A stretch of 64,000 nucleotides of DNA from Tubulanus polymorphus (GCF_964204645.1 NC_134034.1:12722962-12786961); one strand, 5' to 3'; shown: positions 1-7,261, counted from the first letter of the stretch. The notes: generated from the sequence alone by a model not told the origin. Translations and numbers: made by a program.

Positions 1-855
1 GATTATACTTGTAACCTCACGACGGTCCAAGCTCATTTTGTTTCTGATAACCAATCTAACAACTTAAGACCAGTGTAAACTTATTTGGCTCTATAGCCAA
101 TCTAACAACTTAAGACCAGTCTTTTGTTTTTGTTTTTGGCTTAAAGTCAAAAAGTCAGCGTGAAAAAATTCCGGTTAAGATTTTTCGAAATTTGGATACA
201 ATGTTTATGTTTTTTTTTTTTTTTTAATGAAAATAGGGAGTAAGCCTTTAGTAGAATCACAAACTAGAGTTCTAATCTCCACAGTTTACACGTCATGGAA
301 AATATCACATATATTTCCTGAACCCGATGACAGTTCTTTACAAGGTGTCACAAAATGTCAACTCATTTCTCTGAAAAACGTCAACGTTTTGGCAGCTGAA
401 TGAACTGACAGGGAAAGGGAGGGGTAGTGTAGCTAGGGGAACGCATTCCAACAGCTGCATTCCCGATAGCGAGAAGCTGAAATATTGTAAGTAGGAACTT
501 ATCAAAAAAATTTCCGGGGTAATTAGAATAACTTAATTTTTTTGATAGGGAAATAGGTATGTGTGCAATATGTAGTATGCATTCAAAAACCATCGAAGAC
601 GTTTAGAAAAACTACGATGAAATCAGAAATTTATCCGAAATAAATATGAAAAGAAATTGATAAGAAATGTATCAAAAAAGTGCCAAATGGAAATTACTAC
701 TTCCTAGTCGCTATACAGTATTTGGGTTGGTGGTACGATAACCATCACACTCAAACGTGGTGAACAGATGATAAGATAAAAACCCACTATTTAAAAATTT
801 AAAAAAAAAATCTAAAATCGAGAATGTATTTATTGAAACAATCTAAAATATACGA

Positions 856-897
856 ACACGACGTTTCGATCTCACACTAGAGATCATCGTCAGGTGT
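856..897 (-). ncRNA. Minimal type-I hammerhead ribozyme motif (Penelope/retrozyme type)
   Basis: Minus strand reads acac-CTGACGA-t-gatctc-tagtgt-gagatc-GAAA-cg-TC-gtgt: full core, 6-bp stem II, 4-bp stem I, palindromic ACGU in place of stem III, GUC cleavage triplet. Confidence 0.7.
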
Positions 898-1402
898 GGA
901 CGTGAGCTCACCTGACGATGATCTCTAGGATGATGATCTCTTATATTTCAGTATTTGGGTTATTTGCTCAAACGTTGGTCAGATAGTTGATAAAGGTTCA
1001 TTGTGTGGTGAATATGGCATTTATCCGTCGTTTATCTTTAAAACCCTGGCGAATTAAAAAATACATTTCTCGAGATTGCGGGGAATTTTTGCGAATTTTT
1101 CAAAAAAAATATCCCAGAAAGTCCCCAGCCACCTAATTAGTGTTCGGGCATTTCAACGACTGTACGACTGCTCTACTGTATGAGAGAAGCCACCTTCGAC
1201 TAGTTCGCCATCTAACGGACAATTAGGTCAGTAGGTCAGTCAGGCCCGAGGTGACCGCAACCATACCTGAAGGTTTTCATCGACGTCGCCACACCTGATG
1301 GGTTTCAACCAACTTTTCAGCAAACTGACTTCAAAGAAATTTATTTATAAAATCAAAAATAATCACTAGAATTCAACCGTTCTTTTTCAGCCGAACAGAG
1401 CT

Positions 1403-2660
1403 ATGAATTTAAAACTGTTTGTATCGTTTCTGATGACGTTGTTGATGATTTTTTCCCACCTCGTGTTCTACGTGGAATGCAGCGCTGGTAAGGAGGGCCA
1501 GGGGGCGCTACTCACAAAAAATTCACATTTTACAAACAATGATAATTCAGACAGATCACCATTGATAAAACACTATAGATCGGTGTTGTAACGATAAAAC
1601 AAAGATGATCCCACAATAATAAAGAAAGACAAAGTCCGAAAAATGTTTCCTTGAGCTAGCGTAGCTTATTCAACGTTTTGACTATATCCTAATAGTCATC
1701 TTCAGGAATACTGTATTCCTTGAGCTAGTGTAGTTTATTCAATGTTTCGACTATATCCTAATAGCCATCTTCAGGAATACTGTATTCCTTGAGCTAGTGT
1801 AGTTTATTCAACGTTTCGACTTTATCCTAATAGTCATCTTCAGGAATACTGTATTCCTTGAGCTAGTGTAGTTTATTCAATGTTTTGACTATATCCTTAT
1901 AGTCATCATCAGGAATACTGAAGATAAAGATGACTATCAAGATGTAGTCAAAACATTGAATAAACTACACTGGCTCAAGGAATACAGTATTCCTGAAGAT
2001 GACTATCAGGATATAGTCAAAACATTGAATAAACTACACTGGCTCAAGGAATACAGTATTCCTGAAGATGACTATTAGAATATAGTCGACACGTCGAATA
2101 AACTACACTAGCTCAAGGAATACAGTATTCCTGAAGATGACTATTAGGATATAGTCGAAACGTTGAATAAACTACACTAGCTCAAGGAATACAGTATTCC
2201 TGAAGATGACTTTTAGGATATAGTCGAAACGTTGAATAAACTAAAGGAATCGGCTTATACGGATTCTGGTCCAATCCGGACAATATTTGCAGTTCATTTA
2301 TTCATTATTTATTTATTACAAGAAAATGACTTTTAATCCCAATTTCCCGAAAACCGGATGAATTTTGTTTATACCAAATGATCCGAATTAAGTGGGCTCC
2401 ACTCTATTACAATGAACAAACTATGGACTGAAAATAGTCCGGATTAGACTAAAATCCGGGTTAAGCCAGTTTGAGTGTCGACGATACGAGGTCGCGTTGA
2501 AGCCGACGGCGCCGAAAACGGTTCGGTCTCAATCATGCACCTTCGCGGAAAATTCAATCCGATTTTAATTACTGAACTGAGGGAATTGATTTCAGGTCGA
2601 GCGAAAAGAGCACCGGCTCCAACCCCATCCCCAAATGCTTTCTATGGTTCACGCGGCTAA
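1403..2660 (+). CDS. Secreted prepropeptide 1, single-copy tachykinin-related (FxGxR-amide) precursor, 49 aa: MNLKLFVSFLMTLLMIFSHLVFYVECSAG-RAKR-APAPTPSPNAFYGSRG
   Basis: Coding exons 1403-1487 (acceptor tttttcag ends 1390, donor gtaagg 1488, phase 1) and 2596-2660 (acceptor gatttcag). Hydrophobic signal peptide, furin site RAKR, terminal Gly before TAA. Probable 5'UTR exon ends 486 (gtaagt 487). 3'UTR donor gtgagt 2671, last exon from 2778, AATAAA 2878-2883. All splice sites are conserved in the paralog. Confidence 0.8.
1647..2243. repeat. Fold-back array of 69-bp units (4 forward + ~4.5 inverted), each a minimal hammerhead ribozyme motif
   Basis: Plus-strand unit: tattc-CTGAAGA-t-gactat-taggat-atagtc-GAAA-cg-TT-gaata. 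Intact cores at 2126-2169 and 2195-2238 (+) and 1805-1848 (-). Most other copies carry GAAA>AAAA/GACA changes; one has a broken ACGT palindrome. Confidence 0.75.
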
Positions 2661-4608: not shown

Positions 4609-5061
4609 CAATTAAATTAGTAAGTACTTGGAACAAGTATCCATCATATGAAATTGTTTCCTATTAACTTCAAGAATAATTATATGATATTTACTTAGAT
4701 GGTCGAAACTTATTTGAATAAAATAACTTCATCTTTATATTAGTTTATTTACTGATTAGTCTTAAATAATGACCATTCACAAACCGTTTGGACCAAGTCG
4801 TCAAATTCATCCTGTTGTGCAAATCTTATTTGATTAGATGACCTCGTGACTAGCAAATTGTAATTAGGAAAATCAAATCTGATTTGACAAGATAAATTCG
4901 CCTTTGATGATTTGACAAATCGATTTGAATTTGATACCGTTAAATTAGAAAATTAGACCAAATCTAATTTGATTATGACAAGATAAAAACGATTTGCTTA
5001 AAATCAAATTTTGATAAATTCGCCTAAGAATTGAACCGTTCTGTTTCAGCCGAACAGAGCT

Positions 5062-5492
5062 ATGAGTTTAAAACTGTTTCTATCGTTTCTGATGACGTTG
5101 TTGATGATTTTTTCCCACTTCGTGTTCTATGTGGAATGCGGTAAGAAGGGCCAGGGGGCGCTACTCGCAAAAAAAAAATCACATTTCATAAATGATTAAT
5201 TATAACCGTTTGAGGACGAAAAAAAAATTCACAATAATCTTCTGCGTAAAAAATTGAATTTTGCATATCATAAAATGGTGACTTCTAAGCGGAATCCCCA
5301 ACTTTTGAACCAGCGACGCCGGTGGTTGGTTTCGGCCGCAATATCATCTTCGCAAAAAATTCAAAATTCAGAATAAATTCAACCGTTTTAATTACTGAAC
5401 TAAGGAAATTAATTTCAGGTGAAGTGACACAACTACCGCCTCTACCCACGGCACCGCCTTTACCCCCAGGAATAGAGGATACGCGTCGTTAA
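5062..5492 (+). CDS. Secreted prepropeptide 2 (paralog), proline-rich, 50 aa: MSLKLFLSFLMTLLMIFSHFVFYVEC-GEVTQLPPLPTAPPLPPGIEDTRR
   Basis: Coding exons 5062-5140 (acceptor ends 5049, donor gtaaga 5141, phase 1) and 5419-5492. 5'UTR donor gtaagt 4051, 3'UTR donor gtgagt 5498, last exon from 5586, AATAAA 5683-5688. The first 78 coding nt differ from gene 1 at only 4 positions. Confidence 0.75.
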
Positions 5493-7261
5493 TCAACGTG
5501 AGTGAGCCCGGTATACCCGCACACGTGAACGCGTTGAAATCTATCCGAAGGTTTCCTATTCTAAAAATGTGTCTCATTATTTCAGGTCCCGTGTCGTACC
5601 CCCTATCTCCGCGGGCGAGAATTCTGACTGTATTTTTTTGAACAACTTGGCGACCGATTCTAGATCATTTGAATTATGAGTAAATAAATTCACGACAAGT
5701 CAGATAAAAACGTCTTAGAATTAAAGATCATTCTGAAACTGTAGTGATTGGGTAGCAGGTAGCTGGCAAGTCTTTTATATTTGGAGGATGCTTTGATAAA
5801 ATAAAGCACTAAAATGTTGACGACACAATATTAGCCCGCTATAGCGATCTCTCGACCGTCCAGTGCTGCCTCTATGTATAACGATAGCGGGAAGAACGCG
5901 AACTAAAAAAATACTCGCTTGCCAAAGTCTGGAAAACGGCTGCAGTGGACAAACTATTTACCGATTTGCGGGCGGGCCGGGTCCGGATTCCGAGAAAATT
6001 CTCAGGTCTCTAGAACATCACTGAAACTTCTCAGTCGGAAATCTTTCCATGAAAGAATTATCTATAAAACAGTAGATTTGTATCGGTGCATTTTAATTAG
6101 GGAGAGAGCGACAGGTGGTTGTATTGATGTACACTATATTGACTTGTACTCTAGTCTATGTACATCGATGTACACTCTATTGACTTTCAGATAACACGCA
6201 AGTCAAAGAACTTTCCAGCACCTTATGTCAAAAGAGCATCGGCATATCAGGGCCTTAACAACATTTTTCGAAGAAGTGGCTAATATAGCTTAACAAAATT
6301 CAACAAGTAATTAGACAAGTAGTACTATATAGGTTGTTAACTATTTATTTGACGCACGAGCTTTCGCTACTAATGTTTAGAAGCTTCATTCAGTACTACT
6401 CGTCTCGTTAGTACTTATTTTAAACCTGGTTAACACGGCTACTCTACGAATATTCAACAACAAGTAGCTAGGATCTGCTTTTTTTAGAACCGTTTTTTTT
6501 CAAATCCCTCTTGAAAATTCTTCACCAAAACAACAAAATCGTGATATTTGAATGGATTTTTCAATGTATTCAATGTATTTCCATTATTCTAAACAGATTT
6601 TAACGAATGAAATCATTTGGTCCCACGTGACACGTTTAACAGAACAGAACGAAACAAAAATTCGATTTTCAGGCAACCGACAGAGAAATATATTCAAATT
6701 TAATCCCCATAATTTCCTTCATGCATATTCATGATATGTTAATGACACATAAACATTATAATTCCGATATAACATTACTATACCACCCGTGCCGCGTGCC
6801 CCCTTCTAACCAGTCCAACCCACCTCAATAGATAACATTCCCTGGAAAGAGTTTAAGATGACATGAAAAGACAAGAAGACACGGATTGGAAGACATCGAT
6901 CAAGAGAAACGTGCTTTTCATACTTATAATAGTTGGAATCAAACTTAACAACATTTTTTGTAAGATCAAAAAAAAAATTTGCTTACATCGCATTCAATAT
7001 TCGTACATTGGATCCGAATTTTCATAACATTTGGCACCAAGTATTTCAACTGTACAAATCAATAACAAATTTACAAATATTTTATACACATCAATTTTCA
7101 CACATCACCGGATAAAAAATAATTAATACAGCATACAAATATTACATATTCACTTCCCCATTTTTTTTGCAGGACCTATTTTCCTAAATCGAATTTTCCT
7201 CAATTTCTAAATTTTCATTACTAATGTCTTCACACACAAACACATAATGGATGACCTCTTC

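Follow-up and report, generated by a model that had tools for sequence, protein, structure and literature searches.

The stretch analysed here is 64,000 nt of the Tubulanus polymorphus genome (C10:12,722,962-12,786,961), hereafter called the window, with positions counted from its first letter. Near its start it holds two tandem plus-strand copies of one small gene, A (approximately 396-2900) and B (approximately 3392-5700). In both copies a short predicted signal peptide and a small peptide are encoded on separate exons. An earlier note, made from the sequence alone, had taken the pair for members of a toxin superfamily with a conserved signal and a positively selected peptide exon. The interpretation favoured here, with about as much confidence as doubt, is that gene A is a lineage-specific tachykinin-type mini-precursor and gene B its radically diverged, expressed twin.

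In each copy a phase-1 intron follows the signal (A 1487|1488, B 5140|5141), and a further intron in the 3' untranslated region (3'UTR) begins 10 nt past the stop in A (2671) and 5 nt past it in B (5498). Both features had been described in the earlier note and were reproduced from the sequence, as were all of its numerical statements. The signal exon of gene A carries 6 nt extra ahead of the donor relative to B. In the predicted signal region of A, position 4 is a Lys, some 13 residues form a hydrophobic core (mean Kyte-Doolittle value 2.55, 11-residue window), and a plausible cleavage site is preceded by small residues at -3 and -1. Gene A retains an intact open reading frame (ORF), its GT/AG splice sites and a poly(A) signal, and the poly(A)-signal block of exon 4 is conserved with B.

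RNA evidence was taken from assembled contigs, which attest presence but never absence. Two runs were treated as RNA-like because they yielded spliced contigs, one from a 2024 study (X4) and one from a 2014 study (X5); two other runs, whose contigs were contiguous and unspliced, were treated as DNA. A 375-nt X5 contig and a 448-nt X4 contig (depth approximately 207) contain identical GT..AG joints at 4050|5050, 5140|5419 and 5497|5586, which confirms for gene B the signal, peptide and 3'UTR exons, the intron of phase 1 and the one that begins 5 nt past the stop. Gene B is therefore transcribed and spliced in two runs of two studies, as the earlier note predicted. The X4 contig also joins 3443|3940 with GT..AG, and the X5 contig begins exactly at the 3940 acceptor, so the exon previously regarded as the first 5'UTR exon is internal. 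Its proposed start near 340 in A and 3880 in B gives way to splice acceptors at 396 and 3940. The four-exon model holds for the spliced exons of B but falls short of their number, as B has at least five. Since exon 1 of gene A opens at the conserved AG acceptor, at least one further upstream exon is expected there as well. The additional exon of B and its donor are supplied by a dispersed repeat of approximately 270 bp (3358-3628), with opposite-strand copies near 7434-7698 and 30606-30734. This repeat may represent a repeat-derived promoter or an exon without a counterpart in A. The features of the locus are collected in Table 1.

Table 1. Exons, exon parts and large repeat insertions of the A/B locus (window positions).
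Feature	Position	Strand	Details
Gene A, 5'UTR exon 1	396..486	+	Homology to B exon 1, 88% over aligned part; starts at conserved AG acceptor
Gene A, exon 2	1391..1487	+	12 nt 5'UTR, ATG 1403, predicted signal peptide of 28 codons + 1 nt; phase 1 donor
Gene A, exon 3	2596..2670	+	75 nt, phase 1-1; peptide exon, then 10 nt UTR; basis: translation
Gene A, exon 3 parts	RAKR 2598-2609; 15-residue peptide 2610-2654; Gly 2655-2657; TAA 2658-2660	+	
Gene A, exon 4 (3'UTR)	2778..2900 (3' end approximate)	+	AATAAA 2878-2883; 79% identity to B exon 4
Gene B, upstream 5' exon ("exon 0")	3392..3443	+	X4 contig only; within dispersed repeat 3358-3628
Gene B, 5'UTR exon 1	3940..4050	+	Spliced contigs, X4 and X5
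Gene B, exon 2	5050..5140	+	5'UTR, ATG 5062, predicted signal peptide of 26 codons + 1 nt; phase 1 donor
Gene B, exon 3	5419..5497	+	Acidic proline-rich peptide 5421-5483, RR 5484-5489, TAA 5490-5492, 5 nt UTR
Gene B, exon 4 (3'UTR)	5586..5699	+	AATAAA 5683-5688; X4 contig ends at 5699
Fold-back array of 69-nt repeat, gene A intron 2	1647..2243	.	4.0 copies forward, 4.6 inverted
115-nt inverted-repeat (MITE-like) insertion, gene B intron 1	4320..4608	.	High repeat depth in all runs

Exon 3 of gene A (2598-2660) translates to R-A-K-R, 15 residues ending in F-Y-G-S-R, a glycine and a stop. The predicted product is the 15-residue amide APAPTPSPNAFYGSR-NH2, with a calculated monoisotopic mass of 1530.758 ([M+2H]2+ 766.386). 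It presents the features of protostome tachykinins, namely a C-terminal F-x-(G/A)-x-R followed by Gly and an upstream basic site (R-A-K-R).

The canonical tachykinin gene of the species lies elsewhere. In the genome searched (268 Mb, 77 contigs) the published nemertean tachykinin core, taken as a degenerate pattern, has a single site, on C6, and the canonical gene is located there at approximately 19.44 Mb on the minus strand (G000:C6, 19434250-19464249). Its first cassette contains a dibasic site, the 10-residue peptide Q-P-P-N-G-F-Y-A-V-R and G-K-R; the second, approximately 1.3 kb downstream, contains the 9-residue peptide T-P-T-G-F-H-A-L-R and G-K-R. Both match published nemertean tachykinins (PMC8557429, supplement 2), and the two-cassette gene has the layout of the T. 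polymorphus precursor (Thiel et al. 2021, PMC8557429), unlike the single-peptide Lineus type. As this gene is present elsewhere, A would be an extra copy.

The likeness of A to the tachykinin of its own genome extends beyond the five-residue motif. The local BLOSUM62 score of the exon-3 peptide against cassette 1 is 38, with a shuffle mean of 17.8 (P 0.001), and the alignment reads K-R-x-P ... P-N-x-F-Y-x-x-R-G with one five-residue proline-rich insertion. Against cassette 2 the shuffle P is 0.02, and for the gene B peptide against the cassette it is 0.5. All three exons, the two canonical cassettes (66 nt each) and gene A exon 3 (75 nt), are phase 1-1. The elements of gene A exon 3 follow one another as in the cassettes, and its TAA occupies the position of the AAG encoding Lys of G-K-R in cassette 1. 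The view of exon 4 as the remnant of a second tachykinin cassette has weak support (P 0.03-0.04, uncorrected) and is speculative.

The motif was also searched genome-wide as a pattern. F-x-G-x-R-G-K-R gave 10 matches, equal to the control, none of them in a precursor-like context. F-Y-G/A-x-R-G-stop likewise occurs no more often than chance predicts, which shows that endings of this kind can appear fortuitously. One site of the latter pattern, with its count at chance, lies at C3:4028480-4028500 and reads N-K-R, F-Q-F-Y-G-W-R, Gly and a stop after a possible AG acceptor.

Gene B differs from A at three functional elements. Its exon 3 (5421-5492) has T-Q in place of K-R, no F-x-G-x-R motif, and ends in R-R-stop versus R-G-stop in A, and it is thus left without a dibasic N-terminal site and without an amidation Gly. 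Removal of the signal and of the basic residues would leave a cysteine-free peptide of 22 residues with an isoelectric point (pI) of 4.05, 32% proline and a calculated mass of 2238.178.

A comparison of the two copies with BLAST returned four blocks: 304-696/3846-4257 (74%), 1368-1536/5027-5192 (88%), 2550-2597/5375-5420 (90%) and 2791-2910/5606-5713 (70%). The peptide-coding exon sits unaligned between the third and the fourth. In a global alignment the upstream block, the 5' part of intron 1, intron 3 and exon 4 are 74-81% identical, exon 4 itself 79%. Identity is 88% in 5'UTR exon 1, 100% in the 5'UTR part of exon 2 and 88-91% in the intron flanks of exon 2. The signal coding sequence is 94% identical, with 4/78 nt different (3 non-synonymous, 1 synonymous), so that the signal exon and its flanks are much better kept than the non-coding blocks other than exon 1. 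The final 48 nt of intron 2 are 93% identical and the first 27 nt of the peptide exon 59%, making the drop in conservation at the acceptor abrupt. The remainder of the peptide exon is unalignable. The contrast between a conserved signal and a fast-diverged peptide exon, and the conservation of intron flanks and UTR blocks, had both been noticed before and are upheld. Measured against the non-coding baseline, the peptide exon appears to have diverged far more rapidly, with most of the change at non-synonymous positions.

The codon pattern on which the earlier note built its positive-selection claim is real but short. In the first nine full codons (A 2598-2624, B 5421-5447) there are 11 differences, all at codon positions 1-2 and 0 at position 3, exactly as counted before, and 8/9 residues are changed. 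By the Nei-Gojobori method these nine codons hold 10.5 non-synonymous differences over 18.7 sites and 0.5 synonymous differences over 8.3 sites (proportions pN 0.56 and pS 0.06; one-sided Fisher P 0.008). The chance of all 11 changes missing the nine third positions is 0.002, and that of at least 11/18 changes at positions 1-2 is 1e-4 to 2e-3 at a baseline mismatch of 19-26%. These values come from one pairwise comparison of two sequences, in a nine-codon window picked once the differences had been seen; with 19 ungapped codons P rises to 0.07. Past codon 10 the peptide exons need gaps and third-position identity is at chance, so the codon-position signal spans only about 30 nt. Adjacent double changes occur in 3/8 changed codons; when these are counted as single events the rate excess over baseline is weak, but the avoidance of third positions stands. 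The signal exon, in turn, has a pS of 0.065, about as low as its pN of 0.048. Together with the conserved intron flanks this means that the "frozen" signal may reflect gene conversion or RNA-level constraint and not protein-level selection. Given the post hoc window, the gaps, the double changes and the low pS of the signal, accelerated amino-acid-changing divergence of the peptide exon between these two sequences is likely but unproven.

These same observations can be read as decay. Gene B might be a transcribed relic whose peptide exon lost its function and drifted by substitutions, tandem double changes and indels, while gene conversion from A or splicing constraint kept the signal block alike; the excess of non-synonymous over synonymous divergence (dN>dS) would then be an artefact of small sample and multi-nucleotide changes. 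This is considered unlikely, although several features agree with it. B has none of the three tachykinin elements of A (basic cleavage site, motif, amidation Gly), and the rest of its peptide exon cannot be aligned to A. Counting each double change as one event leaves 8 events in 27 nt, a rate that does not stand out clearly from the 19-26% baseline mismatch. The synonymous and flanking sites of exon 2 are as conserved as the non-synonymous ones, which fits conversion better, and 24 codons would stay open by chance with a probability of about 0.3. A drifting exon should not, however, avoid changes at third positions entirely, and if the changes were independent their concentration at positions 1-2 would be improbable. 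The conservation boundary lies within 2 nt of the exon-3 acceptor, an odd place for a conversion tract to end, and B shows good expression and correct splicing in both samples, which are ten years apart in date.

The family is restricted to A and B. Genome DNA searches with exon 1, exon 2 and exon 4 matched only the two copies, and protein searches of the genome with the signal and with each peptide exon detected nothing beyond them. Each peptide exon as a protein query found only itself; the canonical tachykinin was missed too, and the sensitivity of this search is therefore low. In the 20 kb to the left of the window there is no related gene, and that region and the remaining 58 kb of the window have only transposon-like repeats in common with the locus. 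The earlier note was right in recognising real small secretory-type peptide genes, but the proposed superfamily, possibly continuing to the left of the window, comes down to two genes with no relatives in the adjoining 20 kb. It had itself counted a lack of further paralogs against its interpretation, and this is what whole-genome searches with exons 1-4 found. Searches outside the genome, in which all homology queries were single exons, were negative as well. A homologous-protein search with the A exon-2 frame read through into the intron gave no candidate, and phmmer with the B exon-2 frame gave 0 matches among 1.84 billion representative proteins. A substring search of the nemertean neuropeptide catalogue (PMC8557429 supplements) returned no A- or B-like entry, and no paper on an F-Y-G-S-R ending was found in a literature search.

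Under the favoured interpretation, signal peptidase would cut behind the hydrophobic leader of the gene A product and a furin/PC-type convertase after RAKR. The terminal Gly would be converted to an amide, giving APAPTPSPNAFYGSR-NH2 with the protostome tachykinin pharmacophore F-x-G/A-x-R-amide. The peptide exon of gene A would descend from a tachykinin cassette exon that exon shuffling placed after a signal exon of unrelated origin; if so, the intron that starts 10 nt beyond the stop would mark what was once a coding junction. Gene B would be a duplicate of A in which the signal exon, all splice sites and the UTR exons were retained, while the peptide exon lost its cleavage site, pharmacophore and Gly amidation donor and came to encode a 22-residue acidic proline-rich peptide. 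B is the copy expressed in the sampled RNA, possibly from the repeat-derived 5' exon. The data establish the gene structures, the transcription and splicing of B, the copy number and the similarity statistics; the processing and receptor activity of the A peptide, the exon-shuffling origin of its exon and any new function of the B peptide are deduced from these.

Several points weigh against this interpretation. The tachykinin match of A amounts to about 9 identical residues, the similarity of its exon 3 to the cassette DNA is too low to separate descent from convergence, and A has Gly where nemertean tachykinins carry Ala. No spliced gene A contig was present in the two RNA-like runs, with zero depth over A exons 1, 3 and 4 in X4 and X5, and the upstream exon and promoter of A were not located. 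The signal peptide of A was judged from inspection and hydropathy only. No ortholog or homologue of either gene was found in protein collections or in the nemertean neuropeptide catalogue.

A toxin-family role for A and B is unsupported, and no homologue turned up among known toxins. Such a role would cast them as exocrine toxins or defence peptides of the proboscis or epidermal mucus, with A a tachykinin mimic directed at prey or predators and B diversified under positive selection, and this is improbable. Nemerteans are toxic, peptide-secreting animals (PMC6410017), and four or more lineages of venomous or blood-feeding animals have evolved tachykinin mimics, whose genes are distinct from the animals' own tachykinin gene (PMC13311285). 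The conserved signal, sharply diverged peptide exon and non-synonymous excess fit such a role, as do the sizeable contig depth of gene B in one run and the location of the canonical tachykinin gene elsewhere. On the other hand, the genome has two genes only, and A, the putative mimic, is without contigs in both RNA-like runs while toxins are usually abundant. B is acidic, cysteine-free and unlike any known toxin. No tachykinin-type toxin was found in the nemertean toxin literature searched, and the tachykinin mimics known from secretions include none from nemerteans (PMC13311285). A bolder version is more doubtful still: A would be the first nemertean tachykinin "doppelganger", a cassette captured behind a new signal and used beyond the nervous system, in mucus or proboscis, on prey or predators, and B a freshly neofunctionalised proline-rich effector under positive selection.

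Finally, A might be a silent, untranscribed duplicate without a promoter, its tachykinin-like ending owed to chance or not yet decayed, a very unlikely case despite the missing A contigs, the chance-level counts of the ending, a duplicated block that starts approximately 92 nt upstream of the exon 1 acceptor (304 in A, 3846 in B) and an upstream B exon that lies outside this block in a repeat absent from the 20 kb upstream of A, because the ORF, all signals for splicing and polyadenylation, the furin-type site, the motif and the Gly-stop of A are intact against a mismatch of 19-26% in most non-coding blocks, the likeness to the endogenous cassette exceeds the five-residue motif (P 0.001) and neuropeptides of few cells are readily missed by contig assemblies. 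The earlier note had named an untranscribed copy as a ground for doubting its interpretation; the lack of A transcripts touches on this, but contigs cannot prove silence.

Repeats are abundant around the two genes. The fold-back array of the 69-nt repeat in A intron 2 has arms 93-95% complementary and very high depth in all runs; it is an insertion and lies outside the coding design of gene A. The repeat family also occurs in the canonical tachykinin locus. The unit contains a core-like string, CUGAAGA ... GAAAC; an Rfam scan of 1-6500 at E <=0.01 gave no hammerhead match for the array, only generic hairpin matches below gathering scores. Inverted repeats resembling miniature inverted-repeat transposable elements (MITEs) are found in both first introns, in B with 115-nt arms 93% complementary (Table 1) and in A as a short near-perfect hairpin (860-940), again at very high depth. 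On the minus strand, 7945-23667 contains giant ORFs of 1225, 289 and 3314 codons, rich in Glu and Leu and coiled-coil-like, with no Pfam match. They probably belong, as separate exons, to a single very large structural gene oriented convergently to A and B.

The locus bears on how neuropeptide and toxin repertoires diversify. If A is active, this nemertean would possess a second tachykinin-type ligand, produced from a minimal chimeric precursor, and the gene would be a clear example of a phase 1-1 neuropeptide cassette exon put to new use downstream of another signal. The 5 kb of the pair would in that case document the duplication of a bioactive peptide gene after which one copy lost the cleavage site, pharmacophore and amidation signal but preserved the framework for secretion and splicing. 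If the doppelganger interpretation were true, tachykinin would have been recruited independently for a fifth time into an offensive or defensive secretion, here observed while the family numbers two genes. If B is a relic, the locus is a caution that dN>dS in two sequences can mimic toxin evolution.

Three known systems are suited for comparison. In conotoxin superfamilies and in amphibian skin-peptide genes of the preprodermaseptin type, a signal that is near-invariant even at silent sites is combined with a radically diverged peptide on a separate exon. Compared by general description, A and B resemble them in the near-invariant signal and the diverged peptide exon with a non-synonymous excess. 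They differ in number (two genes versus tens), in having no cysteine framework and no propeptide exon, and in a selection signal that consists of a single pairwise comparison.

Tachykinin doppelganger peptides are documented from octopus salivary glands, Aedes saliva (sialokinins) and wasp and Phoneutria venoms (PMC13311285). Gene A likewise would provide an extra tachykinin-like peptide apart from the endogenous gene in a toxin-secreting animal group, but the gland or venom origin documented for those peptides contrasts with a peptide known here from sequence alone. Several doppelganger peptides carry the vertebrate-type F-x-G-L-M-amide ending and target vertebrate receptors, whereas A keeps the protostome R-amide type.

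The closest comparison is with the canonical tachykinin gene of the same genome. No DNA-level similarity between it and A was detected, and no transcript evidence was found for A. The A precursor is shorter (approximately 49 versus approximately 120-145 residues), its signal is unrelated and without the long N-terminal spacer, its peptide carries a five-residue proline-rich N-terminal extension, and its stop directly follows Gly instead of K-R. The two genes nevertheless agree in a dibasic site, a short peptide ending in F-[YH]-[GA]-x-R, a Gly amidation donor and a small phase 1-1 cassette exon that carries the peptide, with P-N-x-F-Y-x-x-R-G common to gene A and cassette 1.

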